Below, one piece after another: positions 33,405 to 62,579 of a stretch of DNA of 64,000 nt. Origin of the DNA: Sphaerodactylus townsendi (Eukaryota); contig NC_059427.1 of NCBI RefSeq assembly GCF_021028975.2, forward strand, positions 8,246,001 through 8,310,000, in the 5' to 3' direction. Below the pieces are notes generated by a model. That model saw only the letters and a list, made by a program, of their open reading frames with translations. It did not search any database and was not told the origin of the DNA. The position numbers and the translations under genes are program-made. The number at the start of each line of letters is the position of its first letter. The stretch's first letter is position 1.

Positions 33405-34507
33405 CTATGTGGTTTGCGACATATGGATTCTTTGATGTTGCCGAAGGTCTGATGTCTGAATATACCTCTTTCCACATTCTGAACACTGATACGGTTTCTC
33501 CCCTGTATGGATCCTTTGATGGCGTAGAAGGTCAGAACGTAAACCAAATTTCTTTCCACATTCTGAGCACTCGTATGGTTTCTCACCTGTGTGGATCTTC
33601 TGATGCCGCTGAAGGTGCGATTGGCAACTGTATCTCTTTTCACACTCTGAGCACTCATAGGGTTTCTCACCTGTGTGGGTTCTTTGATGTTGCTGTAAGG
33701 ATGATGTCTGACTAAATGTCTTTCCACACTCTGAGCATTTGTAAGGTCTTTCCCCTGTGTGTGTTCTTTGATGCACAGTGAGACTTATGCGGTGACGGAA
33801 GGCCTTCCCACACTCTGAGCATCGATAGGGTTTCTCCTCTGTGTGGACTATGTGATGTTGCCGAAGGTGTGATGCCCATCGAAATCTCTTTCCACACTCT
33901 GGGCATTTATACCTTTTCTCTTCAGTGCATATTCTTCGTTGCACAGTAAGACCTACACTGTTGCTGAAAGTCTTTTCAGCCTCTGCACATGGGTTCTGCT
34001 TCTTCCCTGTGTGAATGATCTGATACTGTTGCTGGTGTGATCTTCCACTGGAGCTGTTTTCATATTCTTGGACTTTTGGGGGCTCTTCACTTGTGTGAAT
34101 CCTTTGATGTGATGTAAGAACTGTTCTCCGACTGAAGCTCTCTCTGCACACTGAACAATTATACAGTTTCTCTCCTGGGTTAATCTGTTGATGTGAAATA
34201 AAGTTCATGCTCTGACTGAACCTCTTCTCAAACTGCAAACTATCTTTTGTTTTTTCCCTGGTGTGAATTCTCAGCTGAGAGCTGAGGTTCTGCCTCTTTT
34301 GTGGTTGCTTTTCTTGCTGGATTGGGAATTCCTGATAGTGCCCTCCTTGGCAAGGAATGGGATTACCCTTCCTCTCCAAGAAGTGGCTTCCTTCCGGTCT
34401 CTTTCGTCCATTTAGATTCCCGAAGTTTCCTTTTAGATTTCCATTCCTGCATTTTCCTGAGAATGACACCTGGCGTCTCCCATCATTTTCATTCTCCTGC
34501 ATATCTC
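33405..34507 (-). CDS. SCAN-ZNF gene 3, terminal exon with 7 intact C2H2 fingers plus degenerate ones
   Basis: ORF with [10 protein letters not shown]...[11 protein letters not shown] repeats; ctttgttcaagcag| acceptor at 34508, phase 1. Confidence 0.9.
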
Positions 34508-34641
34508 CTGCTTGAACAAAGAGAGAGACAGAGGTCCAGTTACCAATGTGGCAAGAAGCCAAGTCTCAGACTGGTCCCTCCTATGAAACTTCTGTGTATT
34601 TTGTGTCCTCTGTCAGATCTGCTTTCCTGTCTCAAGCAAAC

Positions 34642-34816
34642 NNNNNNNNNNNNNNNNNNNNNNNNNNNNNNNNNNNNNNNNNNNNNNNNNNNNNNNNNNN
34701 NNNNNNNNNNNNNNNNNNNNNNNNNNNNNNNNNNNNNNNNNNNNNNNNNNNNNNNNNNNNNNNNNNNNNNNNNNNNNNNNNNNNNNNNNNNNNNNNNNNN
34801 NNNNNNNNNNNNNNNN
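34642..34816. other. Assembly gap (175 N) inside a gene 3 intron
   Basis: Run of N. Confidence 1.
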
Positions 34817-39194: not shown

Positions 39195-39420
39195 ATCCTT
39201 CAGCCTACTGGCTGATGTTGCACTAGTCACAGTTCTCTAAAGACTCTCTCAGCCCCAACTACCTCACAAGGTGACTATTATGGGGAGAGGAAGGGAAGGA
39301 GTTTGTAAGCCCCTTTGAGACTCCTTACAGTTGAGAAAAGTGTGGTATAAATCCAAACTCTTCTTCTTTTTCAACTGTGATCAGCCCTGGAGGCCAGAAA
39401 GCTGACCACTCCCTTCTTAC

Positions 39421-40318: not shown

Positions 40319-40583
40319 TCTAAAGCAACACTTCATCCTTGCAGGCAGAAGTTCTGTGTAACAAGATGCCTTTTAATCTGCACAGACAATTAGAAGTCCT
40401 TGTGGCCAAAAGCCCCACCCACAAAAATGGTATTGGTGGACTCAATGATGTTCATGGGCACCACGCTGGAGAGACCTAGACCAGCCCGTTTCTGCATGGC
40501 CTTTCCTTTTACTTTCCTGATATTGACAGAGATTTTGGTCCCAGTTGCGCTCCAGGCCCTCCCACCCAGCAGAAGGGCCTCAC

Positions 40584-41291
40584 CTGTTTCTCCTGCCTCA
40601 CAAGGAACTCCTCAGCCAGGGCAACGGCTTGGGAGCAGCAAAGGGGGTTGCTCTCCCTCACTCGGCTCTGGATCTCGGCAGGCAGGATGCTCAGCAGTTG
40701 CTCCATGATCAAGAGCTCCAGGATCTGCTCCTTGCTGTGATACTCCACTCTCAGCCACCCACGGCACATTTCCCGCAGTTGGCTGTAGGCCCCTCTTGGC
40801 CCCTCAGTCTCCTGGTAACAGAAACGCCTAAACTGCTGACGCTGCTTCTCTCGGCTTATGACTTCCCCTAATAAGATGGCTGCCTTCACTTTCCCATAAT
40901 CCTCTCTGTCTGGGACATCCAGCCTGCTGAAGGCCTCCTCAGCTTCTCCACTGAGAGCTGGCAGGAGTCGGATTACCCAGTCTTCCTTGGGCCAATGACA
41001 GGCTTTAGCCACTTGCTCAAAGGAAGCCAGAAAGGCCTTAGCATCTTCCCAGGGTGAAGGTTTCTCTGGCAAATGTGAGATTCCCCAGGGAGAGTGGGGT
41101 TTTTCCAAAGTCCTGAGGAACTCCTGCCATTGGGCTTCCCAGTGTGCAAGGGAAAGAGATCCCTTCCTTGCTTGTTGATCCATTAGATCTCCTTGTTTCT
41201 TTTGCAGGAATTCCTCAATACTACCAGCCTGGAGGACATGAGGGGATTTTGCTATTCCTTCTGATGCAATGCTTTGCCCTTCTGTTTTCAT
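40584..41291 (-). CDS. Gene 3 first coding exon: extended SCAN (Gypsy capsid NTD-like region plus SCAN)
   Basis: AFLASFEQVAKACHWPKEDWVIRLLPALSGEAEEAFSRLDVPDREDYGKVKAAIL followed by RQQFRRFCYQETEGPRGAYSQLREMCRGWL...EQILELLIMEQLLSILP; |gtgag donor; 236 codons, phase 0. Confidence 0.9.
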
Positions 41292-41980: not shown

Positions 41981-44900
41981 ATCTATTCTGTATGCACCAA
42001 ATACATCATATCAGCAAACATACTCATTCCCTTCAGCCCACGAAGAAAAGGTAGCATACAAAACAAACAAATAAATAAAAATAAAGACTTGGGTGAAACT
42101 GCCTTATACTAAATCAGACCTTCAGGATATCAGCTCCATCCTGTTTGTGCCAACTGCCAGTGGCTTGCCAGAGCCTTTCCTACCATGTTATTTGGGCTGG
42201 CTGAGGATGGAGCTGTCTGAACTGGGGATTTTCTGCATGCACGGTATGGGCTTTACCACAGAATTATGGTCCAGTCTCACTTCCACCCTGCAGAAATCCT
42301 CGTGTTCCAATTCAAGTGCAACCAACAGAGACCAGGACTGAAGAAAATCTACATAGCCCCTGAAGTTCCTTGACCATTCTAGAATGAAGATCTCTACTTA
42401 CATCTCTACACAAACAGACTGCAAGCAGGCAGGAACCCCTCCAACACGTAGTGATGACAGAACAGGAGAAAGCCTGCTCTGCTTGATACTGCTTGCCTGG
42501 ATGGTGAGATGATGTTTGACAAGTGTCCTTGCCCCAATTTTTGATCATTCCAACGCTTAATCTGCATTGCATAAAAGTGTAAACCTTCTCTTTCTTGCAT
42601 CACCACTTGTGAAAACACATGGGGCAGGGGATGGGGGAAAGAAAACTTAAAACCCTTTCCTCACTTGGAGGTTAAAGGGCCTATAGGGTCTACAGCCACC
42701 AAATGTTGTCAATTGGAAGTCAGAAAGAATTGAGGAAGTGGGTGAGAGTGTCTTTCTTTTCAACAGCTTGAGCTTAGCCCTTGAGCATTTGCAGAGTGTA
42801 AACCCCACATTCACAAAATCAGAGTAAAAAAATACAGAGACTTGGGAGAAAGGTACACGTTGACTCTCAGACCCATTTTCCCTCCACTCCAGATTTAAGA
42901 AACCAGAAAAGGCAAGGTTTACACAAGCAGCTGGTAAGTATGAGACTTTCGAGAATCCTGCCCGCATCCTCAGACTGAACAAGAATCTCATACAACTGGT
43001 CAAGCTGGGACTCTGGCACCATGTAATCCACATTTGTTCAGGTGTGGGATATTTTATCCACAAAGTGTCAGGCAAACTGGTTGGGGTGGACCATAAGAAG
43101 TCTGTCTCCTCCCATCTTAATTTATTTTATTATTTATTATTTATTTTATTAAACTTATAGGCCGCCTATCCCCGAAGGGCTTAAGGCTCCTGACCACCTG
43201 GAAGCATTGTGCAGGCCTATATTGTATAGACACAATGGTAGCAGAAAAGTACAATTTCTTCCTCCCCACGGAATAGGATTTGAAATGAGATCTAGCCACC
43301 CAGAACTCCTCAGTTTGACTGCATTTTTGCTATGGTATTCCTTTCCTTACATACCATTTCTTAACATGCCATAGTTAAGGCTTATTATGCTTTGTTAGGA
43401 CCACAGCTCCATTTCAAACTTCTGAAGTTCCTAGCCCTATGCCATTGCTTATTAAATGTCTGCTCCTACTATTTGCATTGATTTACACCTTGAACACCAG
43501 TGAGAAAGGCAAACTGTAAGTGACATAGATCAAACAAAACAAATAAATGTAATCCCCACACAATGGGGTGGGCAGTACAACAACAAAATCCCAGTCCTAT
43601 CTCACAATCCCAAAACTTGCATGTATCAGTGATTTGGGGAGGGGGGTTTGGGGAGCTGTTAACCCCTCACCTAATAGGGCATGGTGATACATACACGGAT
43701 ACATGGTCTGAGAAATCCCTATAACACCCCTGTACAGTAGGACAGGATGATAATACCCATCTTGGAGGTGAAGCGGGGAGTGAGCCTGAGAGAAGTTGTA
43801 GCTTGCTACAGTTATCCTGAATATGTGGCTGTGAGGAAAATTCAGTCAAGGCCTTCCCAGTTTGCTGTATGAACCAATGAATTACACGCATGTAAGGAAA
43901 TATCCTCCAGCCATGGATTGCCCCCATTCCTTCTGTGGATCATCACAACAATCTCTCTGTTCCACATTATAGCTGCCTTTTGTGCGAGGGGTAGCCAACG
44001 GGAAGGATTTTCAATGTTTTTGAATTCTGCATTTGACATTTTTCTGCTCCTAAAATGCAGCCCACTTGAGGGAAGTTTAGCTATGACAGAGAGAACAAGA
44101 AAAGGATTGTGAAAAAGGTTCCTAGGCAATCCTATCGGATGCATCAAGGCTCCAAGCAGGACTTTCCAAGTACAAGAAGAAGAAGAGTTTGGATTTATAC
44201 CCTGCCTTTCTCTCCTGTAAGGACTCTCAAAGCAGCTTACAAACTCCTTCCCTTCTCTACACAACAGACACCTAGTGAGATAGGTGAAGCTGAAAGAGTT
44301 CTGACAGAACTATGACTAGCCCAAGGTCACCAAGCAGGAATGTAGGAGCAGGGAATCAAATCTGGTTCACCAGATAAGGCTCATGCACAGGAGCAGGGAA
44401 TCAAAGCTGCCCTGAGTCCTCCTAGAATTGGTGGGGTGTAAGTACAATAAGTAAACCTGGTCCTCCAGATTAGAGTCCACCTGCTCTTAACCACTACACC
44501 TCTCTGGCAGTGGCTCCTGTTTTCCATTCTCGGGGATTGTCACCTTCTCATTCACCAGACCAGGCAAAAGGAGGAGAGCAAAAGGTGAAAATCTCCATAG
44601 CCCCACATGGCATTCAGCTGAGACCAGTGCAAGAACTCAAGGCAGACAGCCAAAAGGCTCAAGAGTCCACCTCTTTCAGACTGGGTGTGTGTGTGTGTGT
44701 GTCTCCATGGAACCAACTGCATTCCTCCCCCACAACCGCAACACCCTCTCCAACCTTTCCAAATCCTACAGTGATGCCAACATGCCTAATTAAGGTTGCA
44801 AACCAATCGCATGTGCCCGGCACTATATCTGTCGCATGAGTTTAGATCTACAGGGATTGGGGATGATCTCTTGTTGGTCTGGAGGAAAAACTGCCCCTTG

Positions 44901-45249
44901 CTGCTCCTTGGTGTGGGTCCATCTCCAGTTCAGAGGGTCGGGTGCAGAGATAGCAATCCTTTTGGGAAGCTGAGGAGGGGCCAGCCTGACCTTCTCTTTA
45001 GACCCTGCTCTGCACGTAGGACCTAGACAGATCCCTTTGCGGGCTGCCCACCTTCTCCCCCATTCTCCGCCCCACAACTGTTTACCCTTCTAGACATTCC
45101 CCGGTTCCGGCTCCAGCCACGGTCCTCCAACTCTCCAGCAAACAAAGCCGGATCGACACAGGAGGACGTGTGAGGGATTGAGTGTTTTTGGCCCTCCTGA
45201 AGCATCCTAGGAAACGCGGCTCGTTCACTTTAACTCTTTATGGTCCTCG

Positions 45250-46140
45250 TAGAAACAGGGCTGCTTGGTCCCTCGGGGGTTGGGAGACTGCTGCAGATTG
45301 GGAGACCCGCAGCCTGGAGGGAGGGAGGGCGCGCGTTTTGGCCGGGCTGCGGGAGGCGCTGGTTCCGAAAGCCTGAAAAGAGTCCAGAATGGCCTTGACG
45401 TCAGCAGCGTGAGGTCAGACTCGTCGCTCCCCGAACCCGGCTGGTGGCCGCTGTAGCCGCCGCCGCCGCCTCCTCCTCCTTTTCCCGCGCTGCCCATCGG
45501 CGCCTCCTCCGCGCCTCCACTTTCAGCTCTGCCTCCCGGCAAGTCTCCCTGGGCTGGCCGCCGCACCGCAGCCCCTGCGGCGTCCCCGGCACCCTGCGCG
45601 GCTCGGCTCGGCGCTCCTAGAGAGGACATTTCCACCCAAGTAGGTGAAGAGCCAGCGCCGCTTTCTCGCTCCAGCCACGTCCCTAGTGGGGGAGTCGATG
45701 ATCAGCCCTTCCTCTGAGAGAGACGGGGGCGCATCTGCCAGAGGGAGAGGGGAAGGGGGGGTCACGTGTCCCCGGGCGCCCACATGTGATCACGTGGGGG
45801 GGGGCGTCCGGGTACAAAATCCCCCCCCCCCAAGCCCTGTCTGCTGCTGGCCCTGCCAGGCTGCCTGGGACCGCTAGCCCGGCTGAGGGCGCCCGGAGGT
45901 GGGCTCCCAACTCTGGCGCCCAGGGCCCAGCCTGCTCCTGTGCCCCCCCCCCCATCACCCCTCGGGGTCCCAGGCAGCCTGGCTGTGGTAAGTGCGGGGA
46001 GGGGCGCTGGAGCAGGCCGGGCGCCATTTTCTCCCGGTACACCTTCACACATCCCCAAGTTTGAGACCTTCCACCGTTGCTGACGTGGATGCCCCCCCTA
46101 CAAATGCAAAAACCAAGGTCAAGCTGCTTGTGGTGAGCTT
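45250..46140. promoter_or_regulatory. CpG island, probable bidirectional promoter (gene 3 on minus, transposase gene on plus)
   Basis: Very high CpG; CRE TGACGTCA 45396; E-boxes GTCACGTG 45761 and TCACGTG 45790; YY1-like GCGCCATTTT 46021; plus-strand donors gtaagt 45988 and gtgagc 46133. Confidence 0.7.
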
Positions 46141-46211
46141 TTGGATTTGGACATTTGCAGGGCAACATGTGAGCTGTTCTTTTCTTTTTAACCATTGGTG
46201 TTGCCATTCTC

Positions 46212-46510
46212 CAGAGGCGTAGCTGGTCCATACTGCGCCCAGTGTGCACTCTGTGTTTTCTGCTCCCCCGTGCCGCCCTTCCATATGCCGTTCACCTCCC
46301 TTACCTTAGTTTAGCTTGGAAAAAGCAGCCTGTTCCCTTGGGGCTTGCAAGTTCTCCTGGGAAATGTAGTTTCCACCAGGCTGTTTTCAGCCTGAAGGGA
46401 ACAGGCCGCTCCTCCAGTCTGCTCTGTTTCACCAATGTAAGCAGGGGGGTGGGGAGAGAAGAGGGGTGATTTTCTGCCCCAGGCGTGTGCCCGATGCAAC
46501 GCGCATCCCT
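46212..46510. mobile_element. hAT MITE (TIR CAGAGGCGTAGCT), right end deleted in this copy
   Basis: The corresponding element in copy B (57587-57896) retains both TIRs and the TSD. Confidence 0.7.
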
Positions 46511-47394
46511 TATATTTAAGGAAATGTTGAAGGACCTGATAGCTAGAAATGCAACTGGTGTGTGCTGAATTGTAGACTTCAGGGGTATCTAATGGCTAGG
46601 ATTAATGTAGATAAATAAGTGGGTGTCTAATGGCTAGTATTAATGTAGATAAATAAACAGTAGATTGTTAGCTCAGCCCAGTGGGGCACTGTTGAGTTCT
46701 GGGCCAAAAAGACTTACTGAGTCTGTCTCCTGGGGTTTCAGTGAGGATAACTTCTTGTAGGCTATGTCCTCTAGGTTGTGGTTGAGCAGCATAGCAACCT
46801 AGATAAGATGAGAAATTAGAAAGTGGGTTTGGAAAAGTTTTTAAATGGGATGGTCTAGAGAAATGTTCTGCAAATGTACCAGAGCCCTTTGGGGGTGGGC
46901 GGTCTATTAAATCTAAAATATAAATACATAAATTACTCACTGCTTTTTATAAAAGGTCTGATCCCCACAGTCAGAATAATAACATTATGCCTTCTTAAAA
47001 GACTTTCTTCCTGTTGCATGTACATCTGAATGCTTATTAGTCTGTCACTGTGTTGCCAACTGGCCTGCAGATATAAATCCTGGGTCTGTTGCAGCCAATT
47101 GCTCTGATCTGTGTTTCAGTAAGATTCTGTTTTAAGGAGGCTTACGTGGTGAACTAGATTAGCTTGTGCACTGCCACACATGCCAACTTGCCTGCATTGC
47201 AACACTGTCTTCCTGTTGCACGTGCCTCTAAAGCATGTAATTTGTTAGGGATAACACTACAGCCTCTCTACCATGTATGCTCTGCCTGCCTCTCTACAGT
47301 TCACAGCTTTCTCCTGCATTGGCACGTTTGTTGGAGATGTAAAATGTCCTTCATTATCACAGGTGAAAAGCAGTTGGTGTGTGCAGCTACCACA

Positions 47395-50016
47395 ATGGAG
47401 CACAGACAACGAAAGAAAAAGGAGAGTGGAGCACAAGCACGGAAGAGACGAAAGTTGGCAGCGGAGGAGGCAAAGAAATCAAGCCAAGTCCTCTTGACTT
47501 TCTGTAAGAATCCTCAATCAGTTTCTTCAATCCAGTCTGAGGAGTCAACGGGTCCTTCCACAAGTTTCCCAGTAGCAGAGGTTGGATCTAGTGCAGCATT
47601 CTCAGGAGCAGAGGAGGATGTGGGGATGGCTACATCAGAGGGTGTTGAGATGGAGGAAGATGAAGAGATTTTACCTGGGAAGTCAGAACCTGTTGACACA
47701 CCTGAACCTGGTGAGCCGGAGGGTGTCGAGGAGTGTTTGACTGCCATGCAAAAAGTCATCCTAAAGCATGATGTGGGGCTTCTGCCGTTCGATGAGCAAA
47801 CCCAAAGACCACAGATCTCTGATGCACTGAGAACACAAATGGTGCAGATGGGATTCAGGTATTTTCAGAATAGCGAGGGGCCTTTCAAACCCATACCACC
47901 CCGAAATCGTCGAATGACCGAAAGGTGGTTCAAGATGAGATCAGGAGATGGTCAGGGTAAGGAGGTGACTCGATCATGGCTCATGTATTCACCCTCCAAA
48001 GGGACAGCATTCTGTTTCTGTTGCCTTCTGTTTTCAAGATCAGACGTTCAGTCTGCGTGGGAGAGGGAATCTGGGTTTGACCAGTGGAAAAGAAATAACA
48101 TGGTTATTCTTCATGAAAACGGGAGCAATCATCGGGAGTGCTTTACCCAGTGGAAATTAATGGAGAGAAATTTGGCCAAGAGCAGAGGAATGATTGACAC
48201 TGACCTACAGACAGAGGTTGAGAAGGAGAGGCAGAAGTGGCGTGACATTTTCAGCAGAGTCCTAGACTGTGTAAAAACCCTTGCGATCCAGAACTTGCCT
48301 AATCGAGGCCACAGGGAGTCATTTCAACTGGATTATGAATCCAATGTGGGAGATTTCCTGGAGTTAGTTAAGTTGCTGACTCGCCGTGACCCTGTCATGA
48401 AACAGCATCTTGCTAACATCCAAAGTGATCTAGGCGCAGTTTCTTACCTTTCACCAGGTATCCAAAATGAATTCATCCACCTCATGGCTTCTGCGGTTCG
48501 TCAGAATATACTGAGAAAGATTCGTTCTGCCAAGTACTATGGCATCATGTTTGACTCAACTCCTGATCTGGCACACAGTGACCAGATGTCAGAAGTTGTT
48601 AGGTATGTGGAAATTGATGCTGAGAGCAGAAAAGTCCGTGTTAGAGAGTCCTTTCTTGGTTTCATCTGGATCCACAAGAAAGATGCAGAGAGTTTGACTG
48701 GGGAAATCTTGAGACAGCTGGAGAAGGACAAACTGGATCTGGAGGATTGTCGGTCACAATGCTACGACAATGCTGCTGTAATGGCTGGACTCAGAAGTGG
48801 TGTACATCAAAGAATAACTGAAAAAAACCACCTGGCTTTGTCCATAAATTGTGACTATCACTCACTCAACTTGGTGGGTGTTCATGCAGCCTCACAAGAA
48901 CCAAAGATGGGCACATTTTTTGCAGACTTAGATGCTCTGTATGCGTTTTTTGCGAATTCAGACAAGCGCTGGGCAGAACTCAAAGGGGCTGTGCCTTTGA
49001 GTCTCAAGTCACAGTCTGAAACCAGGTGGAGCGCAAAGGCAAAAGCAATGAAACCAGTCCAGAGGTATCTTAAGAATATAATCAAACTTCTCCAGAACAT
49101 GGTAGATGATAGAGAAGAGACCGATGAATCAAGGCGTGAAGCGAAGGTACTGGTCAGATGCCTGTTGAGTTATGACTTTCTGACTTATGTAGGGTTTTGG
49201 GACAAGGTACTTGGTCGCATTGACCTTGTTCAAAAGAAGCTGCAGAATCCCAGCATAAACTTTCACGATGCTGCCCAAGATCTAAGATCTCTCCGAGATC
49301 ATTTTGATGCTAACAGAGACATTTTGGTCAGTGAGTCAATTGGTGAAGGGCTTCGTCTGTGCCAGAAATTCAATGTTGAATTTGAATGTTGTAGAAGATA
49401 TAGGAAAGCAATGCCTGGTGAGACAGCAAGAGACTCAGGGTTAACAGCAAAGGAGGAAATGGAAGGCAGTATGAAGGCAGCACTAGATCATCTTCACAGA
49501 GAGATGAACGAAAGGTTCACTCGTTTGCACAGCATCGATACCAACTTTGGATTCCTCCTTGATGTCGAGAAACTGTGTTATGGCACTGACATACAAGACC
49601 TACAGGAGAAGTGTGTGAATTTAGGCAATTTCTACAGCAGTGAAGTGGATGGGCAGAAGCTGTATCAAGATATTTTGGACTGCAGAATGCTACTGACAGG
49701 GCGGGATGGGCTGCGGATATCTAGTCCTGAACAGCTTCTTGAATTCATTGTTCAGTTTGGAGATGAGTTCACCTTCTTCAATCTTATTGTTGCTACCAAA
49801 ATACTGCTAACCATTGCAGTTTCCATTGCCAGCTGTGAGCGAACTTTCAGTAAGTTGAAACTGATACTTTCATATCTGAGAAGCTCAATGGGTCAGCAAA
49901 GACTCTGTGATCTTGCTCTGCTGAGTGTGGAAAGAGAAGAGACAGAGAAGACGAACTTTGATGACATCATCGACAGATTTGCATCAGCAGAGGCTGGGAA
50001 GGTGCCTCTAATGTAG
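47395..50016 (+). CDS. Intact hAT-family transposase-derived protein, 873 aa (ZMYM1-like: TTF zinc finger, DUF4371-like region, DDE core, hAT C-terminal dimerisation domain); probably domesticated
   Basis: Uninterrupted ORF; basic NLS-like RKKKESGAQARKRRK; WLMYSPSKGTAFCFCC...GFDQWK...HENGSNH; D in GIMFDSTPD (48553), D in QCYDNAAVM (48766), CDYH, ETRWS, E in ASCERTFSKLKLI (49837); Kozak ACAATGG after the tcacag| acceptor at 47362; AATAAA 50418. Confidence 0.92.
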   Translation: MEHRQRKKKESGAQARKRRKLAAEEAKKSSQVLLTFCKNPQSVSSIQSEESTGPSTSFPVAEVGSSAAFSGAEEDVGMATSEGVEMEEDEEILPGKSEPVDTPEPGEPEGVEECLTAMQKVILKHDVGLLPFDEQTQRPQISDALRTQMVQMGFRYFQNSEGPFKPIPPRNRRMTERWFKMRSGDGQGKEVTRSWLMYSPSKGTAFCFCCLLFSRSDVQSAWERESGFDQWKRNNMVILHENGSNHRECFTQWKLMERNLAKSRGMIDTDLQTEVEKERQKWRDIFSRVLDCVKTLAIQNLPNRGHRESFQLDYESNVGDFLELVKLLTRRDPVMKQHLANIQSDLGAVSYLSPGIQNEFIHLMASAVRQNILRKIRSAKYYGIMFDSTPDLAHSDQMSEVVRYVEIDAESRKVRVRESFLGFIWIHKKDAESLTGEILRQLEKDKLDLEDCRSQCYDNAAVMAGLRSGVHQRITEKNHLALSINCDYHSLNLVGVHAASQEPKMGTFFADLDALYAFFANSDKRWAELKGAVPLSLKSQSETRWSAKAKAMKPVQRYLKNIIKLLQNMVDDREETDESRREAKVLVRCLLSYDFLTYVGFWDKVLGRIDLVQKKLQNPSINFHDAAQDLRSLRDHFDANRDILVSESIGEGLRLCQKFNVEFECCRRYRKAMPGETARDSGLTAKEEMEGSMKAALDHLHREMNERFTRLHSIDTNFGFLLDVEKLCYGTDIQDLQEKCVNLGNFYSSEVDGQKLYQDILDCRMLLTGRDGLRISSPEQLLEFIVQFGDEFTFFNLIVATKILLTIAVSIASCERTFSKLKLILSYLRSSMGQQRLCDLALLSVEREETEKTNFDDIIDRFASAEAGKVPLM

Positions 50017-50979
50017 GGCCTTCATCTGTGCTTTGGAGCAAATATTGTCATGGAGTTCTCCAAAAGCTCATTCGGTGAGCTGACTCTTACAATTCTCCTT
50101 TTTTTTTTCACAGTTTGGAGGGAAAGGCAGATCCTGTGATCTCAGTTTGCTGAGTGTGGAGAGAGGACCTTGAAAGATGGATTCTAGAGTGTAATATCTA
50201 TATTGTGCAGTAAATACAGAAATGTTGTGAGAATACCCTTAAGATATCATCCCTTGTTGTTTTTATTGAAATGTCTATTAATTGAAGAATACTTTTCACA
50301 ATATAAAGGTTTGTGACTGCAACAAATCCATACCATGGAAGACTTTCCAATTTATCTTACAGAAATCTTTGTACTTTATTCTGAGTATTACAAGAGAAGT
50401 TATTTTGTAAAGACTGTAATAAAACATTCTGAAAGCATTTTAAGTCATATGACACTTAAAACACTTTAAAGCATTATAACAGTTGTAAAGCATTTTGAAA
50501 ATGTTGTCAAAAGTTTTTTATTTCCAATGTGTGGCTTGGGCCATTGCTGTGTTCAGATTTGTCCATTGGGGCATGTTCTATAATGTGATGATGACTTTGA
50601 GATGACCTATGCAAAAAAAAGTTGTTTGGTTGTGATGGAGGAGGGTGGAAAACTCAGATTTTGCACCGGGCTACAAGGCAAAGGTAAGCAAGAGAGGCCA
50701 GAAGAACTCTTTATAGAGTAAGTCAAAGCTAAGGACAGATTTCTTGAATCTTTGGGAGATCAGTTTTGGATCAGACAGAGAACAAAGCACAGCCGCAAAA
50801 GATATGGCTGGGTGTCCATCCCTCTGGTTCTTTCTAACAAAGAGAACCAAGGATAGTCTTACTATACAGAGTTGAATGTTGCTGGACAGAGGCTATGGAT
50901 GGTAGAACATGGGACCCAGAGAGATTCCCTCACAGGCTGCCCAGTCTAGGGACCTTCTCCCTCGCCTCACAGATCTTTA

Positions 50980-54070: not shown

Positions 54071-54380
54071 CACCATACCAGGCAAAAGATTCTCTTGAGG
54101 AGGGCAAAAGTTGAAAATCTCCATAGCCCCACATGGCATTCAGCTGTGACCAGTGCAAGACCTCCACAGCCAAAAGGCTCAAGAGTCCACCTCTTTCAGA
54201 TGGGGGGTGGGGGTGTCCATGGAACCAACTGCATTCCTCCCCCACAACCGCAACAACCTCTCCAACCTTTCCATGCCTAACTAAGGTTGCAAACCAATCC
54301 CGTGTGCCTCGGCCCTATATCTGTCGCATGAGTTTAGATCTACAGGGATGGGGGGGGGGGATCCTCTTGTTGGTCTGGAG

Positions 54381-54528
54381 CAGGGGTAGGGAACCTGCGG
54401 CTCTCCAGATGTTCAGGAACTACAATTCCCATCAGCCCCTACCAGCATGGCCAATTGGCCATGCTGACAGAGGCTGATGGGAATTGTAGTTCCTGAACAT
54501 CTGGAAAGCCGCAGGTTCCCTACCCCTG
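54381..54528. mobile_element. Palindromic hAT MITE, copy-B-specific
   Basis: TIR CAGGGGTAGGGAACCTGCGG; TSD gtctggag/g-ctggag; empty site in copy A at ~44877. Confidence 0.9.
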
Positions 54529-54686
54529 GCTGGAGGGAAAACTGGCCCCTTGCTGCTGCTTGGTGTGGGTCCATCTCCAGTTCAGAGGGACGGGTGCAGA
54601 GATGGCAATCCTTTTGGGAAGCTGAGGAGGGGCCAGCCTGACCTCCTCCTTAGGCCCTGCTCTGCACGTAGGGCCTAGCCCTAGAC

Positions 54687-54834
54687 CAGGGGTAGGGAAC
54701 CTGCGGCTCTCCAGATGTTCAGGAACTTCAATTCCCATCAGCCTCTGTCAGCATGGCCAATTGGCTATGCTGGTAGGGGCTGATGGGAATTGTAGTTCCT
54801 GAACATCTGGAGAGCCGCAGGTTCCCTACCCCTG
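54687..54834. mobile_element. Palindromic hAT MITE, copy-B-specific (same family)
   Basis: TIR CAGGGGTAGGGAACCTGCGG; perfect TSD CCCTAGAC; empty site in copy A at ~45022. Confidence 0.92.
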
Positions 54835-55019
54835 CCCTAGACAGATCCCTTTGCAGGCTGCCCACCGTCTCCCCCGTTCTCCGCCCCACAACCTTCCAGG
54901 CATCCCCCGGTTCCGGCTCCAGCCACGGTCCTCCAACTCTCCAGCAAACAAAGCCGGATCGACAAAGGAGGACGTTTGAGGAATTGAGTGTTTTTGGACC
55001 TCCTTAAGCATCCTAGGAA

Positions 55020-55940
55020 ACGCGGCTCGTTCACTTTAACTCTTTATAGTCCACGTAGAAATAGGGCTGCTTGGTCCCTCGGGGGTTGGGACCCGCAGCT
55101 TGGAGGGAGGGCGCGCGTTGTGTGTGGGCCGGGCCGGGGGCGGCGCTTGCACCTAAAGTCCTGAATGGCCTTGACGTCAGCAGCCGTGAGGCCAGACTCG
55201 TCGCTGCCTGCACCTGAGCGGCGCCAGCGGGAGCAGCCGCCTTTCCCGCCCAGCAAGAGGAGCCGCCGCCGCCGCCTCCTCCTCTTCTTCCTGCGCTGCC
55301 CATCAGCACCTCCTCCGCGCGCCCTCCGCGCCTCAACTTTCAGCTCTGCCTCCCGGCGGCAAGTCTCCGGCGTCGCGCGGCGCGGCTCGGCGCTCCTAGA
55401 GAGGAGATTTCCACGCAAGTAGGTGAAGAGCCAGCGCCGTTTTCTCGCTCCAGCCACGTCCCTAGTGGGGGAGTCGATGATCAGCCCTTCCTCTGAGAGA
55501 GACGGGGGCGCATCTGCCAGAGGGACACGGGAAGGGGGGGGGTCACGTGTCCCCGGGCGCACACATGTGATCACGTGGGGGGGGCGTCCGGGTACAAAAT
55601 CCCCCCCCCAAGCCCTGTCTGCTGCGGGCCCTGCCAGGCTGCCCGAGACCGCTAGCCCGGCTGAGGGGCGCCCGGAGGTGGGCCCCCCGACAGGTTCCCA
55701 ACCCTTCTGTGAGAAAATGGCGCCCAGGGCCCAGCCTGCTCCAATGCTCCCTCCCCCCCCCCACCCCTCGTGGACCCAGGCAGCCTGGCTGTGGTAAGTG
55801 GGGGGCGGGGGCCGCTGGAGCAGGCCGGGCGCCATTTTCTCCCGGTACCCACATCCCAAGTTTGAGACCTTCCACCGTTGCTGACGTGGATGCCCCCCTA
55901 CAGATGCAAAAACCAAGGTCAAGCTGCTTGTGGTGAGCTC
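55020..55940. promoter_or_regulatory. CpG island, duplicate of 45250-46140
   Basis: CRE, E-boxes, YY1-like site and both splice donors are retained; CpGs are not depleted. Confidence 0.65.
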
Positions 55941-55980
55941 TTGGATTTGGAAATTTGCAGGACTAAATGTGAGCTGTTCT

Positions 55981-57554
55981 TAAGAACATAAGAACAAGCC
56001 AGCTGGATCAGACCAGAGTCCAGCTAGTCCAGCTCTCTGCTACTCACAGTGGCCCACCAGGTGCCTTTGGGAGCTCACGTGCAGGAGGTGAAAGCAATGG
56101 CCTGCTGCTGCTGCTGCTCCCGAGCACCTGGTCTGCTAAGGCATTTGCAATCTCAGATCAAAGAGGATCAAGATTGGTAGCCATACATCGACTTCTCCTC
56201 CATAAATCTGTCCAAGCCCCTTTTAAAGCTATCCAGGTTAGTGGCCATCACCATCATCATCCTGTGGCAGCATATTCCAAACACCAATCAGACGTTGCGT
56301 GAAGAAGTGTTTCCTTTTATTAGTCCTAATTCTTTTCCCCAGCATTTTCAATGGATGCCCCCTAGTTCTAGTATTGTGAGAAAGAGAGAAAAATTTCTCT
56401 CTGTCAACATTTTCTACCCCATGCATAATTTTATAGACTTCAATCATATCCCCCCTCAGACGTCTCCTCTCCAAACTAAAGAGTCCCAAACGCTGCATTA
56501 CTCTCCTCATAAGGAAGGTGCTCCAGTCCCTCAATCATCCCTCGTTGCCCTTCTCTGCACTTTTCCTATCTCCTCAATATCCTTTTTTTGAAGGATCACG
56601 GCGACCAGGGCGGATTTTGTTACTCAGTGCTGAGTCATGCCACTGCCACTTTAAATAAGGGCATGACAATCTTTGCAGTTTTATTCTCAATTCCTTTCCT
56701 AATTATCCCCAGCATAGAGTTTGCCTTTTTCACAGCTGCGATGCATTGAGTTGACATTCCCATGGAACTATCAACTAAGGCGCTAAATCCTTTCCTGGTC
56801 TGTGACTGATAGCACTGACCCCTGTAGCGTGTATGTGAAGTTTGGATTTTTTGCCCCTATGTGCATCACTTTACATTGTGCTACATTGAACTGCATTTGC
56901 CATTTCTGAGCCCACTCACCTAATTTATCAAGGTCCGCTTGGAGCTCTTCGCAATCCTTTGTGGTTCTCACCACCCTACATAATTTGGTATCATCTGCAA
57001 ACTTGGCCACCACGCTACCCACCCCCTACTTCCAGGTCATTTATGAATAAGTTAAAGGCACTGGTCCCAAAACGGATCCCTGGGGGACACCACTCCCTAC
57101 ATCTCTCCATTGTGAGAATTTCCCATTTACACCCACTCTTTGCTTCCTGTTTCTTAACCACTTTTTAATCCATAGGAGGACTTCCCCTCTTATTCCTTGA
57201 TTGCTGAGTTTTCTCAATAGTCTCTGGTGAGGAACTTTGTCAAAAGCCTTTTGGAAATCCAAGTAGACAATGTCCACTGGTTCCCCCTTATCCACATGCC
57301 TGTTTACACCCTCAAAGAACTCTAGTAAGTTTGTAAGACAGGATTTGCCTCTGCAAAAGCCATGCTAACTCTTTCTCAGCACGTCTTGCTTTTCTACATG
57401 TTTAATAATTTTATCTTTAATGATAGATTCTACTAATTTACCAGGATCAGATGTCAAACTGACTGGCCTGTAATTTCCCGGGTCCCCCCTAGATCCTTTC
57501 TTAAAGATTGGTGTGACATTGGCCATCTTCCAGTCTTCAGGGATAGAGCCTGAT
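55981..57554 (-). mobile_element. 5'-truncated CR1 LINE, same family as 37067-39194, in the 5'UTR intron of copy B
   Basis: taagaacataagaac tail; RT motifs YLDFQKAFDKVPH and FADDTK; absent from copy A (gagctgttct|tttcttttta). Confidence 0.92.
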
Positions 57555-57586
57555 CTTTCTTTTTAACCATTGGTGCTGCCATTCTC

Positions 57587-57896
57587 CAGAGGCATAGCTG
57601 GTCCATACTGCGCCCAGTGTGCACTTTGTGTTTTCCGCCCCCCGCACAGCCCTTCCATGCCCTTACCTTAGTTTAGCCTGAAAAAGCAGCCTGTTCCCTT
57701 CAGGCTGAAAACAGCCTGTTGGGAACTACACTTCCCATGAGACCTTGGGGCTTGCAGGAACAGGCCGCTCCTCCAGTCTGCTGTGTTTCTCCAATGTAAG
57801 CATTTGCCCGGGGGGGGGGGGGGGGGGGGAGGGAGCGATTTTCTGCCCCAGGCATGCGCCTGGTGCAATGCACATCCCCCAGTAGCTCCGCCTCTG
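57587..57896. mobile_element. hAT MITE predating the duplication
   Basis: CAGAGGCATAGCT...AGCTCCGCCTCTG; TSD ccattctc/ctattctc. Confidence 0.8.
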
Positions 57897-58773
57897 CTAT
57901 TCTCCCTCTCTTTTTCTCTTATTTTTAAACAAATGTTAAAGAACCTGATAACTAGAAATGAAATGCAACTGGTGTGAGCTGAATTGTAGACTTCTTCATG
58001 GGTGTCTAATGGCTAGGATTAATGTAGATAAATAAACAGTAGATTGTTAGCTCAGCCCAGTGGGGCACTGTTGAATTCTGGGCCAAAAAGACTTACTGAG
58101 TCTGTCTCCTGGGGTTTCAGTGAGGATAACTTCTTGTAGGTTATGTCCTCTAGGTTGTGGTTGATCAGCCTAGCAACCCAGATAAGATGAGAAATTAGAA
58201 AGTGGGTTTGGAAAAGTTTTAAAATGGGATGGACTAAAGAAATGTTCTGCACATGTACCAGAGCCCTTCGGGGGTGGGCGGTCTATTAAATTTAAAATAT
58301 AAATACGTAAATTATTCACTGCTTTGTATAAAAGGTCTGGCCCCACAGAGAGAAGAATAATATTATGCCTTCTTCTTAAAAGACTTTCTCCCTGTTGCAT
58401 GTGCATATGAATGCTTATTCATATTTCACTGTGTTGCCAACTGGCCTGCAGATATAAATCCTGGGTCTGTTGCAGCCAATTGCTCTGGTCTGTGTTTCAG
58501 TAAGATTCTGTTTTAAGGAGGCTTACATGGTGAATTAGATTAACTTGTGCACTGCCACACATGCCAACTGGCCTGCATTTCAGCACTGTCTTCCTGTTGC
58601 ACGTGCCTCTAAAGCATGTAATTTGTTAGGGATAACACTACAGCCTCTACTATGTTTGCTCTGCCTGCCTCTCTACAGTTCACAGCTTTCTCCTGCATTG
58701 GCAAGTTTGTTGGAGATGTAAAATGTCCTTCATTATCACAGGTGAAAAGCAGTTGGTGTGTGCGGCTACCACT

Positions 58774-61452
58774 ATGGAGCACAGACAACGAAAGAAAAAG
58801 GAGAGTGGAGCACAAGCACGGAAGAGACGAAAGTTGGCAGCGGAGGAGGCAAAGAAATCAAGCCAAGTCCTCTTGACTTTCTGTAAGAATCCTCAATCAG
58901 TTTCTTCAAATCAGATCTGAGGAGTCTTGGGATCCCTTCCACCAAGTTTCCCAGTAGCAGAGGTTGGATCTGAGTGCAGCACTTCTCCCAGAAGCGAGGA
59001 GGGATGTGAGGATGGCTACATCAGAGGGTATTGAGATGGAGGAAGATGAAGAGAGATTTTTACCTGGGAGGTGGGAACCTGGTGACACACACCTGAACCT
59101 GAGGTAGGCGGGAGGGTGTCGAAGGAGTGTTTGGCTACGCCATGCAAAAAGTCATCCTAAAACATGATGTGGGGCTTCTGCGTTGATGAGCAAACCCAAA
59201 GAACCTACGGTCTCTGATGCACTTTCGAGAACACTGGGAAATGGTGCAGATGGGATTCAGGTATTTTCAGAATAGCGAGGGGCCTTTCAAACCCATACCA
59301 CCCGAAATCAGTGTGAGATGACCCGAAGATTGGTTCAAGATAGAGATAGGAAATGGTCCAGGAGTAAGTGACTTCAGCTCATGGCTCTCATAATCCTATT
59401 CACCCTCCAAAGGGACAGCATTCTGTTTCTGTTGCCTTCTGTTTTCAAGATCAGACATTCAGACTGCATTGGAGAGGGAATCTGGGTTTGGCCAGTGGAA
59501 AAAATATGGCAGGATTACTGATCATGAAAATGGGAACAATCATCGGGAGTGCTTTACCCAGTGGAAATTAATGGAGAGAAATTTGGCCAAGAGCAGAGGA
59601 ATGATTGACGCTGACCTACAGACAGAGGTTGAGAAGGAGAGGCAGAAGTGGCGTGACATTTTCAGCAGAGTCCTAGACTGTGTAAAAACCCTTGCGATCC
59701 AGAACTTGCCTTATCGAGGCCACAGAGAGTCATTTCAACTGGATTATAAGATCCAATGTGGGAGATTTCCTGGAGTTAGTTAAGTTGCTGACTTCGCCGT
59801 GAGCCTAATGTCAAACGAAACAGCATCACTGGCAATCATCAAAGTGATCTGGCGCGGTTTGCTACGCTTTCCATAGACATCCAAAATGAATTCATCCACC
59901 TCTAAATGGCTTCTTGATTGCATTAGAATATGCTGAGAAAGATTTGATTTCTGCCAAGGAGTACTATGGCATCATGTTTGAAGCTCAACTCCTGATCTAG
60001 CACCACGGTGACCAGATGTCAGAAGTTATTAGGTAATGTGGAGAGTGATGCTGAGAGCAAGAAAAGTCCGTGTTAAGAGAGTCCTTTCTTGGTTTCATCT
60101 GGATCTACAAGAAAGATGCAGAGAGCTTGACTGGGGAAATCTTGAGACAGCTGGAGAAGGACAGAAAACTGGATCACAGAGATTGTCGGTCACAGTGCTA
60201 CGACAATGCTGCTGTGGCATATTTCTGGACTCTCCAAGTGGGGTGTACATCAAAGAATAACTAGAAAAAACCACCTGGCTTTGTCCATAGAATTGTGATA
60301 ATCACTCACTCCAACTTGGTGGGTGTTCATGCAACCTCACAAGAACCAAGATGGGCACATTTTTTGGGCACAGATGCTGTATGCGTTTTTTTTGGAATTC
60401 GAGGATGGCTGGGCAGAACTCAAGGGGCTGTGCCTTTGAGTCTCAAGTCACAGTCTGGGAAACCAGGTGGGCGAGGGCTAAAAGCAATTGAAACCAGTCC
60501 AGAGGTATCTTGGAATAATCAAGCTTCTCCAGAACATGGAAGATGATAGAAGAGACCGATGAATCAAGAAGTGATGAGCGGGAATTGCTGGTCAAGAATA
60601 CTGCTGTTAGAGTTGATTATGGCTTTCCACGACATGTGGAGTTTTAGGACAGGTAGCAGTGCATTGACCTTGTTCAAAAGAAGCTGCAGAATCCCAGCAT
60701 AAACTTTTCCGCGATGCTGCCCAAGATCCTAGAATCTCAAGAGATGTTTGATGCTAACAGAACATTTTGGTCAGTAATTAATTGGTGAACCCGTCTGTGC
60801 CAGAAATTCAATGTGGTGAATGTTGTAGAAGATATGAAAGCAATGCCTGGTGAGACAGCAAGAGAGACTCAGGGGTTAACAGCGAAAAGGAGGAAATGGG
60901 AGGCGAAATTGTGAGGCTGGCACTAGATCAATGCTATTTTTTGAGAGATGAGCGAAAGAGTTCACTCGTTTGCTGCCTCGATACAACTTTGGATTCTCCT
61001 TGATGTAGAAACTGTGTTATGGCACTGACATACAAGACCTACAGGAAGTGTGTGAATTTAGGAAATTTCTACAGCAGTGATGTGGATGGAGCGGCTGTAT
61101 AAAGATAGGCTTTTGGACTACAGAATGCTACTTTGACGGAAGTAGGGATGGGCTGCGGATATCTAGTCCTGAACAGCTGTGATTCATTGTTCGGTTGGAG
61201 ATGGTTCCTACCTTCTTCAATCTTATTGTTGCTACCAAAATACTGCTAACCATTGCGGTTTCCATTTGCTGGCTGTGGCCGAACATTCCAGTAAGTTGAA
61301 ACTGATACTTTCATATCTAGGAAATAAATGGGTCAACCAAAGACTCACCAGTCTTGCTCTGCTGGTATGGAAAGAGACAGAAGGCAGGCTTTTGATGACA
61401 TCATCGACAGATTTGCATCAGCAGAAACTGGGAAGGAGTGCCTCTAATGTAG
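58774..61452 (+). pseudogene. Second hAT transposase copy with many frameshifts as assembled (pseudogene or mis-polished intact paralog)
   Basis: Colinear with 47395-50016 from ATG to ATGTAG; clean patches (58774-58908, 59400-59747) alternate with dense 1-3 bp indels. Confidence 0.75.
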
Positions 61453-62579
61453 TGATGGGGCCTTCATCTGTGCTTTAAGACAAATATTGTCATGGGGTTC
61501 TCCAAAGAAACTCATTCGGTGAGCTGACACCTAATTCTCGCACACAGTTTTGGAGGAAAGGCAGATCCTGCGGTCTCCAGTTTGCTGAGTGTGGAGAGGA
61601 CCGAAGATGGATTCTAGAGTGTAATATCTATATTTTTTGGTAAATGCAAATGTTGTGCCAGAATACAGCAAGATATAATGTTGTTTTTTTATTGAAATGT
61701 CTATTATTCAGAATACTTTTCACAATATAAAAAAGGTCTGTGACTACTATGATCATACCATGGAAGACTTTCCAATTTATCTACCAAGAGAATGTGCACT
61801 TTATTCTAGATGTTACAAAGTTGTTTATTAGACTGTGGCTGTTAAACTGTTTGATAAGCATGACACTTAAAACACTTTAAAGCAGTATAGGTTAGCTTGT
61901 TTAAGTATCAAAATTATTTCTGCTGTGTGGCATGGACCATTGCTATGTTCAGGTTTGTATGTTGGGGTATGTTCTATAATGTGATGATGACTTTGTAGAA
62001 GCGTGGTGCAAAAAAAAAGGATTTAAGTTTGAGTAAATTGGTGGGGAGGGTGTCATCACATATGGGGGGGGTGGGGATGGGGAAGCCGGACAACAGATTT
62101 TTGGGCTGCCTTTCCCTAGATACGCCTCTAAGATGGGAAACAATGCCATCGTTCACCAAAGCAGCCATTTTCTTTAGGAGAACTGGTCTCTGTCAGCTGG
62201 ACAGCAGGGCTAGGGTTGCCAAACACCAGATTGGGGTGGGTGGGTAATGATCTCCTGGAGTTACAACTGATCTCTAGAATACACAAATTGCTTATTTGTC
62301 TAGTATTTATTTAGTTAGTTACTTGATTTCTACCCTACACCTTTACTTGCAAAGCCAACCCAGCACAGGTTCCAACAGTCAATAAATAAAACAAAAACCC
62401 TACACACGTTTAAAACATTATTAACTTCCCTTGGAGGAAGGGGTATACCCTAGTGGTCCTCTAGCTCTAAATCCCACTCCTCTACAGGTTCCATCCCTCC
62501 GTCTCCAAGTGTTTCCCAAATTCTCCTGGGGAGCCCAGGACAGGGCTTGCAGGAAGAGGCTGTTTCTTCCTGAGTCTGT

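Follow-up and report, generated by a model that had tools for sequence, protein, structure and literature searches.

A run of seven consecutive codons has been rewritten in the zinc finger of one of two neighbouring transposase copies, A and B, on chromosome CM037616.2 of Sphaerodactylus townsendi. Both versions of this patch, as found in the 64-kb window (the whole stretch of DNA analysed here), are real sequences, the change falls on the branch leading to A, the substitutions are clustered in a non-random and codon-phased manner, and they lie on what is modelled as a helix. Our reading of the whole, put forward tentatively and with somewhat less than an even chance of being right, is that A and B are paralogues of a dispersed hAT family within a segmental duplication, and that the rewritten helix of A became fixed because selection favoured a changed surface of the protein.

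Two neighbouring copies of a dispersed hAT transposase

The preliminary description of this DNA, made from the sequence alone, had recognised a neighbouring pair of TTF-finger hAT transposases, here identified as ZMYM1-like, and this was borne out. Each copy lies in one segment of a local duplication (Table 1), and an unmatched spacer of ~3.5 kb separates the two segments. The LINE fragment found only in segment B (57554-55978) is an inverted match (93%) to 37629-39195, and reverse-transcriptase ORFs lie at 37114-39098. The same description had placed the family inside a KZFP cluster. The locus is indeed surrounded by SCAN/C2H2 zinc-finger genes, but the family as a whole is not tied to it, as further copies were found on other chromosomes and thousands of short-read contigs match A at 88-95% likeness. 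The A/B family is a dispersed, high-copy transposon, a passenger in a local segmental duplication within the SCAN/C2H2 cluster. Homology among copies stops on the right side near 50646-50648, and no matching inverted repeat was located on the left side.

Table 1. Coordinates (window positions) of the features discussed in the text.
Feature	Position	Strand	Description
Segment A of local duplication	44571..50620	+	Transposon copy and flanks; matches 54097-62017
Segment B of local duplication	54097..62017	+	Extra 1.6-kb LINE fragment at 55978-57554
Copy A	47395..50016	+	Intact single-exon ORF, 873 codons plus stop; ZMYM1-like hAT transposase; LOC125428571
TTF-type zinc finger of A	47863..48267	+	135 residues modelled
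Zinc ligand codons of A	Cys 48013-48015, Cys 48022-48024, His 48112-48114, His 48130-48132	+	C51, C54, H84, H90
A-type patch	48091..48111	+	R-N-N-M-V-I-L, between conserved W-K and first Zn-binding His; derived, private to A
B-type patch	59502..59522	+	K-Y-G-R-I-T-D; ancestral-like
Clean block	A 47986..48336	+	Indel-free; matches B 59397-59747, 94.6% identity
Copy B as assembled	58723..61460	+	Homologous to A ORF; outside two clean blocks, ~68 small indels break the frame; no annotated gene
B indel-rich block 1	58915..59396		Probably poorly polished nanopore gap fill; abrupt onset
B indel-rich block 2	59748..62017		Same character as block 1

The open frame of copy A spans 47164-50016, and an 873-aa product is on record for LOC125428571 at CM037616.2:8293395-8296016; the protein is the same as P0001 except for one 16-residue gap. 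It carries DUF4371 (PF14291, E 1.6e-16, 61.4 bits against a cut-off of 32.1) and the hAT C-terminal dimerisation domain (PF05699, E 2.3e-07, 30.9 bits against 21.4). Of the 127 columns with a conservation of 90% or more, copy A retains 119. It also has all 11 acidic columns whose conservation among 47 full-length homologues reaches 95%, which may include the DDE-type catalytic residues, and the dN/dS at family level is 0.40-0.54. Judged by its open frame, its conserved columns and this family-level ratio, copy A still looks maintained. The branch leading to A shows 14 nonsynonymous and 6 synonymous changes outside the patch, which is indistinguishable from neutrality and therefore does not independently mark A as a host gene under selection.

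The condition of copy B has to be read against the way in which the genome was put together, a Supernova 10X assembly whose gaps were filled by TGS-GapCloser with ~3x ONT reads. In the alignment that includes the second indel-rich block of B, 204 gap openings stand against 265 mismatches, compared with only 15-45 gaps between A and either of two other genomic copies, L001 and L002. None of the indels of B was present in the short-read contigs, and the best run contained a share of just 0.13 of the B 31-mers. The private branch of B amounts to ~10% against ~2% for A; the indel-rich blocks show an excess of B-only changes and none on A, and the excess on B also appears at synonymous-type sites (69 in B, 6 in A). 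The transition/transversion ratio was uninformative as a noise test for B. The apparent decay of B looks like mostly assembly noise and, because its frameshifts have the appearance of unpolished nanopore gap fill, B is not shown to be a pseudogene. We also considered and rejected an ancient pseudogene whose clean blocks had been homogenised by gene conversion: B is sister to A (12% distant from it and 21-24% from L001 and L002), its private branch is 5 times that of A, and the synonymous-type excess has no equivalent on A. Copy-specific 'pseudogenes' in this assembly can be nanopore gap-fill artefacts and, as such artefacts can mimic pseudogenes, paralogue comparisons are best confined to clean blocks, in which A and B diverge by 3-4%.

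Sequence, polarity and structure of the patch

Positions 47988-48336 of A and 59400-59747 of B align without gaps, with 19 mismatches in 349 aligned bases. Nine of these mismatches are concentrated at 48092-48110, within the 21 nt of the patch, and only three (48199, 48301 and 48315) fall in the last ~210 bp. Copy A reads WK-RNNMVIL-HENGSNH where copy B reads WK-KYGRITD-HENGNNH, and the two do not differ in the C-x2-C and H-x5-H ligands. The alignment thus upholds what had been seen initially, namely a near-identical indel-free stretch with seven consecutive codons changed, unaltered zinc ligands and few differences after the finger. The earlier hand count of ~16 nonsynonymous and 3 synonymous changes is also the result of the Nei-Gojobori method (16.0 and 3.0; dN/dS 1.3). 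The patch alone accounts for 9 nonsynonymous and 0 synonymous changes, leaving 7 and 3, with a dN/dS of 0.57, for the stretch without it.

All nine patch differences between A and B affect codon positions 1 or 2, and the seven third positions are all unchanged. With 9 of the 14 first and second positions altered, the hypergeometric probability of this distribution is 0.0068, in a test that is post hoc and based on 9 sites. A compensated frameshift within the patch was rejected, given that the in-register alignment is the best one, with all seven third positions matching (shifts were checked by hand); for the same reason the patch is best described as the same backbone with point changes and not as foreign sequence. 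Such a codon phase speaks for selection at the protein level and against one mutational accident, but does not prove it.

The low quality of much of B might suggest that the patch is a mistake of assembly or consensus calling in one copy. The patch, however, is located within a clean block, its B version equals the state of two independent copies, and both versions are reproduced exactly, each of them whole, in short-read contigs of other runs, which refutes such an error and leaves it next to no probability. The nine B-type letters are found together in one contig each of runs X2 (depth 81) and X3 (depth 41), and the A-type letters in contigs of X3 (depth ~60), X5 (30) and X6 (6). No mixed or intermediate version of the patch appeared in these four runs of three organisms. 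The A- and B-type patches are both real and behave as separate loci.

The same contigs bear on whether A and B might be two haplotypes of one locus, the duplication being false and the patch an allelic polymorphism. An assembly of this type, in which B is largely noisy fill, would lend itself to that mistake. Moreover, the runs are distributed as genotypes at one locus would be, with only the B type in X2, only the A type in X5 and X6, and both in X3, although the absences prove little because contigs can drop variants. The depths point to two loci instead: in X3 both types reach at least the depth shown by other single copies of the family (39-49), the B type in X2 is at the full depth of a single locus (62-81 for other copies), and a contig identical to A at 49299-49515 reaches 164 in X2, twice the single-copy value. 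In addition, the clean-block divergence, the LINE insertion and the unmatched spacer together would be much for alleles, and we consider the two-haplotype explanation improbable.

The direction of change could be deduced from L001, whose patch is K-Y-R-R-I-A-V, and L002, with K-Y-D-R-I-T-S. In the four-copy alignment, K-Y-x-R-I-x-x is common to B, L001 and L002 and A alone departs from it, its patch differing from the other three at 7-9 positions, all of them codon position 1 or 2. Because L001 and L002 share the patch of B, the B type can be taken as ancestral and the change assigned to the branch of A. This branch has accumulated 27 substitutions in 2,569 usable sites, 7 of which fall at 48092-48109 and 20 in the other 2,548 sites; 7 within 21 nt was never reached in 200,000 random placements, and the Poisson probability for a given interval of that size is 6e-10. 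With essentially all change on A, the rewrite appears one-sided, affecting one helix in one copy, and does not resemble a two-sided arms race.

Comparison with the wider family leads in the same direction. The first five positions of the patch are conserved reasonably well among 78 homologues (K/A, P/N, E/P, R/K, I/V/L) and only the last two are free; before the first His, the wider family has W-K-[KA]-P-E-[RK]-I-x-x. The third position is E, P or D in the family and N in A; the fourth is R or K in 75 of the 78 homologues and M in A. Both A and B have the four zinc ligands, which do not vary in an alignment of 70 fingers. These results do not sustain the original picture of a hypervariable recognition helix that both paralogues were diversifying, under two-sided positive selection like that of KRAB zinc-finger genes. 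The excess of nonsynonymous changes over the whole stretch could be cited for it, as could residues three and seven of the patch, where B differs from L001 and L002, but that excess disappears once the patch is removed, any private changes of B would be restricted to two or three positions that are free across the family, and the helix is not hypervariable among homologues. Already contradicted by the polarity, selection on both paralogues is very improbable.

In the AlphaFold2 model of the A finger (mean pLDDT 85.8; 85 for residues 71-80 and 93 for residues 81-90), the patch forms a short helix ending in the first Zn-binding His, in keeping with the helix initially presumed. This predicted helix comprises residues 78-85 (N-N-M-V-I-L-H-E), covering the patch and His84, and is followed by a long helix (88-107) that contains His90. 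Searches for structural relatives of the finger gave no Foldseek match at E <= 0.001, and the best VIA-align hit (Z 4.4) was an unrelated zinc finger, with no BED-finger match. As the domain has no solved relative, contact of the patch helix with DNA may be proposed by analogy only; a literature search found no relevant paper on DNA binding by TTF fingers.

Selection or accident in copy A

According to the interpretation that we tentatively prefer, the segmental duplication in the SCAN/C2H2 cluster would have carried two paralogues that are ~96% alike where the assembly is clean. Copy B would have retained the ancestral short helix ending in the first Zn-binding His. In copy A, 7-9 point substitutions would have turned K-Y-(G/D)-R-I-T-(D/V) into R-N-N-M-V-I-L; all seven codons differ at a first or second position, and the Zn ligands and the hydrophobic core are unchanged. 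The burst would then have been fixed by selection for a changed surface of A. Because a near-universal R/K is lost and the helix turns hydrophobic, the new surface may alter or even abolish the nucleic-acid contact of the finger, and the loss of this basic residue could simply be damage.

The main competitor, somewhat unlikely in our estimation, is a single complex mutation that changed a 19-nt tract on the lineage of A in one step and was tolerated under little or no constraint. It could have arisen as a multinucleotide mutation by an error-prone polymerase, as a templated patch, or by micro gene conversion from an unsampled donor, for which the very many family copies are potential sources. 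The nine letters always travel together, and the lack of intermediates in the four runs agrees equally well with one event and with a sweep completed long ago. The substitutions of the A branch outside the patch are compatible with neutrality, the 8 of 127 highly conserved columns at which A departs amount to some decay, and the rewrite removes a residue conserved in 75 of 78 homologues, as damage would. No donor was detected, though, on either strand of the window, where the best 27-mer match besides the B site was 17-18/27 and one 12-mer match, at 42182, failed to extend. Nor was an A-type patch found among 101 homologues, in a finger-restricted search or in a short-fragment search, covering 5.8 billion proteins. 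A donor that was foreign or decayed should have brought in third-position changes as well, and third positions are all kept against 9 changes at the 14 first and second ones (P 0.007); we know of no mutational process that respects codon phase. A specific one-step route, a quasi-palindrome or template switch, was rejected separately: inside the A patch, the 6-bp arms of an inverted repeat enclose a 3-nt loop, but the fold z is -0.29 (63 of 200 shuffles equal it) and both arms differ from the ancestor.

A more ambitious version of the selective explanation, in which A is a host-retained paralogue and a short burst of positive selection, acting on each of the seven helix residues, gave its single TTF finger a new target while B kept the ancestral specificity, seems doubtful to us. 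The intact ORF of A and the presence of A-type letters in runs of three organisms would agree with co-option by the host, while the high copy number and dispersal of the family and the near-neutral ratio on the A branch would not. If this version were true, A would be a hAT-derived DNA- or RNA-binding factor gaining a new target inside a SCAN/C2H2 cluster, and the A/B pair would be the first natural pointer to the nucleic-acid-reading surface of the TTF finger.

Selection on the helix of A, in whichever form, would make of A and B a natural experiment, two ~96% identical proteins that are one seven-residue helix apart. The TTF finger is a type without a solved structure or a mapped DNA-binding surface, and a comparison of binding by A and B would reveal its DNA-reading face. 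A selected rewrite would also bear on how the specificity of a transposase can shift in one burst, on escape from parasitic non-autonomous elements and on the co-option of transposases as host factors. A single mutational accident, on the other hand, would be a clustered mutation of unusual size and odd codon phase, of limited wider interest.

Relation to known systems

Copy A shares its architecture, consisting of a TTF finger, DUF4371, a FAM200-ZBED5 RNase-like region and the hAT C-terminal dimerisation domain, with the ZMYM1-like or 'DUF4371' hAT transposases (recorded as 'zinc finger MYM-type protein 1-like' or '52 kDa repressor of the inhibitor of the protein kinase-like'), and is 56-58% identical over its full length to lizard, sea-urchin and tick ZMYM1-like members. 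It differs from them in having seven residues off W-K-[KA]-P-E-[RK]-[IVL]-x-x, with Met in place of the near-universal basic residue, and in a patch shared with no other database member found.

Some hAT transposases, such as Hermes, possess an N-terminal CCHH BED finger that is generally held to bind subterminal transposon DNA. The finger of A is likewise an N-terminal CCHH finger in a hAT transposase, but TTF fingers form a sequence family of their own. Clustered multinucleotide mutations and short template switches are known to produce several co-inherited substitutions within ~20 nt in one lineage; compared with these, the 7-9 changes in A are a large number, no template was found for them and all third codon positions were avoided.

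Finally, the rewrite resembles the helix turnover of KRAB and SCAN C2H2 genes in its clustered nonsynonymous change before the first His, with ligands and scaffold intact, and in the location of the gene inside such a cluster. It departs from that system in that the finger of A has a different fold (C-x2-C, ~29 residues, H-x5-H) and stands singly and not in an array, and in that one copy alone has changed; diversification in C2H2 arrays is usually confined to three or four particular positions of the helix, whereas in A it affects seven consecutive residues.

A seven-codon patch in the transposase finger

The two neighbouring ZMYM1-like hAT transposase copies, A (LOC125428571) and B (58723-61460), could be aligned without gaps between 47988-48336 and 59400-59747. 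This stretch contains 19 differences, 9 of them at 48092-48110 and only 3 in the last ~210 bp. Read in the frame of the long ORF, the seven codons between the conserved WK and the first zinc-binding His (48091-48111 in A, 59502-59522 in B) encode, with their flanks, WK-RNNMVIL-HENGSNH in A and WK-KYGRITD-HENGNNH in B, which confirms the divergent patch reported in the preliminary description. Its hand count (~16 nonsynonymous vs 3 synonymous changes) was reproduced by the Nei-Gojobori method, which gave 16 and 3 for the aligned stretch, and 7 and 3 (dN/dS 0.57) after exclusion of the patch.

The finger region of A and B was then compared with two other genomic copies, L001 and L002, taken as outgroups. 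A common patch backbone was found in B (K-Y-G-R-I-T-D), L001 (K-Y-R-R-I-A-V) and L002 (K-Y-D-R-I-T-S), A alone being different. The branch leading to A accumulated 27 substitutions over 2,569 usable ORF sites, and 7 of them fall at 48092-48109, one per patch codon; for 2 further A/B differences in the patch the outgroups give no polarity. At the rate outside the patch (0.78%), 0.16 changes would be expected per 21 nt, and when the 27 changes were distributed at random 200,000 times, no 21-nt window ever received 7. On the sequence evidence of this polarity and this cluster, the event is one-sided, B being ancestral and A rewritten. Diversification of both paralogues, as originally proposed, is contradicted by the agreement of B, L001 and L002, and we regard it as very improbable.

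The helix had also been called hypervariable, which the family does not bear out: in 78 homologues the patch reads K/A, P/N/S, E/P, R/K (75/78) and I/V/L, followed by two freely variable positions. In A the conserved acidic and basic pair has become N and M, and the segment has turned hydrophobic. An AlphaFold2 model of the residues encoded by 47863-48267, with 70 aligned fingers as input (mean pLDDT 85.8), places the patch in a short helix running up to the first zinc-binding His (model residues 78-85), supporting the position first assigned to it; the second zinc-binding His starts a long subsequent helix. Neither Foldseek nor exhaustive VIA-align searches retrieved a solved structural relative of the finger (best Z 4.4), and our literature search found no paper on DNA binding by TTF fingers. 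By analogy with C2H2 and BED fingers, the patch helix may read DNA.

Read support and assembly of copy B

Contigs from four public short-read runs (X2, X3, X5 and X6) were aligned to A; such contigs show presence, not absence. A single X2 contig (depth 81/81) and a single X3 contig (41/101) each carried all nine B-type letters; the A-type letters occurred in the remaining depth of X3 (~60), in X5 (30) and in X6 (6), with no mixed version among the contigs of the four runs. As each version was reproduced whole in separate runs, both patch sequences are real, and an assembly or consensus artefact is extremely improbable. Allelic variation, i.e. a false haplotypic duplication, is a minor rival that is orthogonal to the cause of the change. 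It would agree with the fact that X2 yielded no contig of the A type, and X5 and X6 none of the B type, but the B-type contigs are as deep as those of other single copies of the family (62-81 in X2; 39-49 in X3) and X3 carries both types, which favours two loci over two alleles and makes the allelic reading improbable. Two other A-specific radical replacements lie in or near the finger, Leu to Trp at 48059, a Phe or Leu position in the family, and Tyr to Asn at 48301. At 48059 all aligned contigs of X2, X3 and X6 show the ancestral letter, the reference letter being found in X5 alone (depth 30, in agreement with its A-type contig over the patch).

As assembled, the frame of copy B is interrupted by about 68 small indels and no gene is annotated there. 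These defects start abruptly at 58915, are absent from 59397-59747 and reappear from 59750. Gap openings nearly equal mismatches in the A/B segment alignment (204 vs 265), as against 15-45 gap openings and 250-450 mismatches between A and L001 or L002. Three-taxon distances assign a private branch of about 10% to B and about 2% to A; this excess is equally strong at synonymous-type sites (69 vs 6) and flat over codon positions (86/92/86), so that purifying selection on A cannot explain it. Within the clean blocks the two copies have similar numbers of private changes (A:B 9:9 and 8:6). According to the assembly paper, gaps in the 10X Supernova assembly were filled by TGS-GapCloser from nanopore reads totalling about 6.6 Gb and polished afterwards, a coverage of ~3x if the genome is taken as about 2 Gb. 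Of the 31-mers sampled from B, a share of only 0.13 occurs in the best public run, close to what the clean block alone would supply, and none of B's indels was found among the contigs aligned to A. Taken together, the abrupt edges, gap/mismatch parity, branch excess, nanopore filling and absent 31-mers and indels indicate that the indel-rich blocks of B (58915-59396 and 59748-62017) are most likely poorly polished gap fill. Moreover, one X2 contig that matches A exactly at 49299-49515 is at double the depth of a single copy (164 vs 81), as would be seen if the true B had the same sequence as A in this interval. Copy B is in frame within its clean blocks, and its broken frame as assembled does not demonstrate a pseudogene. 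Further indel-dominated duplicate pairs were seen upstream (44571-44884 vs 54097-54380; 45596-46181 vs 55375-55981), with 1-6-nt indels and abrupt edges (in one example, 13 mismatches vs 20 gap openings); most likely these indels are also unpolished nanopore fill, in one copy or the other of each pair.

Copy A, its family and its locus

Features of the locus
Feature	Position	Strand	Details
Copy A open frame	47164-50016		Pfam DUF4371 and hAT C-terminal dimerisation domains
Copy A product	Met at 47395		873 residues; on record for Sphaerodactylus townsendi at chromosome CM037616.2:8293395-8296016, assembly GCA_021028975.2
LINE	37114-39098	+	two adjoining reverse-transcriptase ORFs
C2H2 zinc-finger arrays (three)	9747-11444, 19126-20760, 33405-34562	-	
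SCAN-domain exon	40509-41291	-	
N run	34642-34816		175-N gap interrupting the third gene region, kept as N in the analysis

The closest relatives of A are hAT transposases named 'zinc finger MYM-type protein 1-like'. Identity to A is 74% for the next S. townsendi protein and 56-58% for lizard, sea-urchin and tick proteins. A retains 119 of the 127 columns conserved in at least 90% of 47 full-length homologues, including every conserved acidic one. By each domain test applied it is an ordinary ZMYM1-like hAT transposase, a known gene class with an unusual private variant. Terminal repeats of the element were looked for and could not be defined. Isoform X2 of LOC125428571 is identical to the A product except for a 16-residue gap (47488-47535), a 48-nt GT..AG segment, which would be unusually small for an intron in a vertebrate. 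Since 48-nt length variants occur close by in DNA contigs of paralogous copies (47478>47527 in run X5), this 'intron' may come from the transcript of a different copy. Just upstream of the start codon, ~50 nt (47136-47185) reach contig depths of 10^5-10^6 in all four runs, with loose ends extending into what looks like a highly abundant short interspersed repeat, which points to a SINE-like fragment in the 5' region of the element.

Both copies lie in a segmental duplication (44571-50620 vs 54097-62017), and the B segment alone carries an extra LINE piece, an inverted, 93% identical copy (55978-57554) of the 3' 1.6 kb of the LINE (37629-39195). The annotated gene upstream of A is a SCAN-zinc-finger gene. 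The family had been described as embedded in a KZFP cluster; L002 is located at 12.95 Mb on the same chromosome, L001 and a third copy, L003, are on another, and 878-2,800 contigs per run, mostly 90-95% alike, aligned to A. The family is thus dispersed and high-copy, and not special to the zinc-finger cluster. At 55-60% identity it is spread patchily over lizards, the sea urchin Diadema setosum, ticks (Rhipicephalus, Ixodes), ants, spiders, snails, frogs and Hydra, a distribution that suggests horizontal transfer of this hAT lineage. One 58% identical relative (Hemicordylus capensis LOC128347425 isoform X2; 1,047 residues) also carries a KRAB domain (PF01352), possibly a KRAB-hAT transposase fusion gene in another lizard.

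Origin of the rewritten helix

All nine A/B differences in the patch occupy first or second codon positions, where only 5 of 14 letters are retained, and the 7 third positions are identical (hypergeometric P 0.0068 for the nine differences and 0.03 for the seven polarised changes, both post hoc). We know of no mutational process that respects codon phase. Fixation of amino-acid-changing mutations in A's helix, with synonymous sites at the background rate, would produce exactly this phase, and we tentatively consider, at somewhat below an even chance, that the rewrite was selected. Against selection, intermediates were not seen, changes elsewhere on A's branch are close to neutral (14 N, 6 S), a conserved residue was destroyed, and the phase test is a post hoc one on nine sites. 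A single complex mutational or conversion event, simply tolerated, seems rather unlikely: a foreign or decayed replacement sequence would differ at third positions too, and conversion finds no donor for the A-type patch in the 64-kb window. The in-register match rules out a compensated frameshift, and the fold of a small inverted repeat within the patch of A is equalled by that of shuffled sequence.

The case of copy A resembles the turnover of recognition helices in KRAB/SCAN zinc-finger genes in outline only: its fold is different, it has one finger, and the change occurred once, in one copy.
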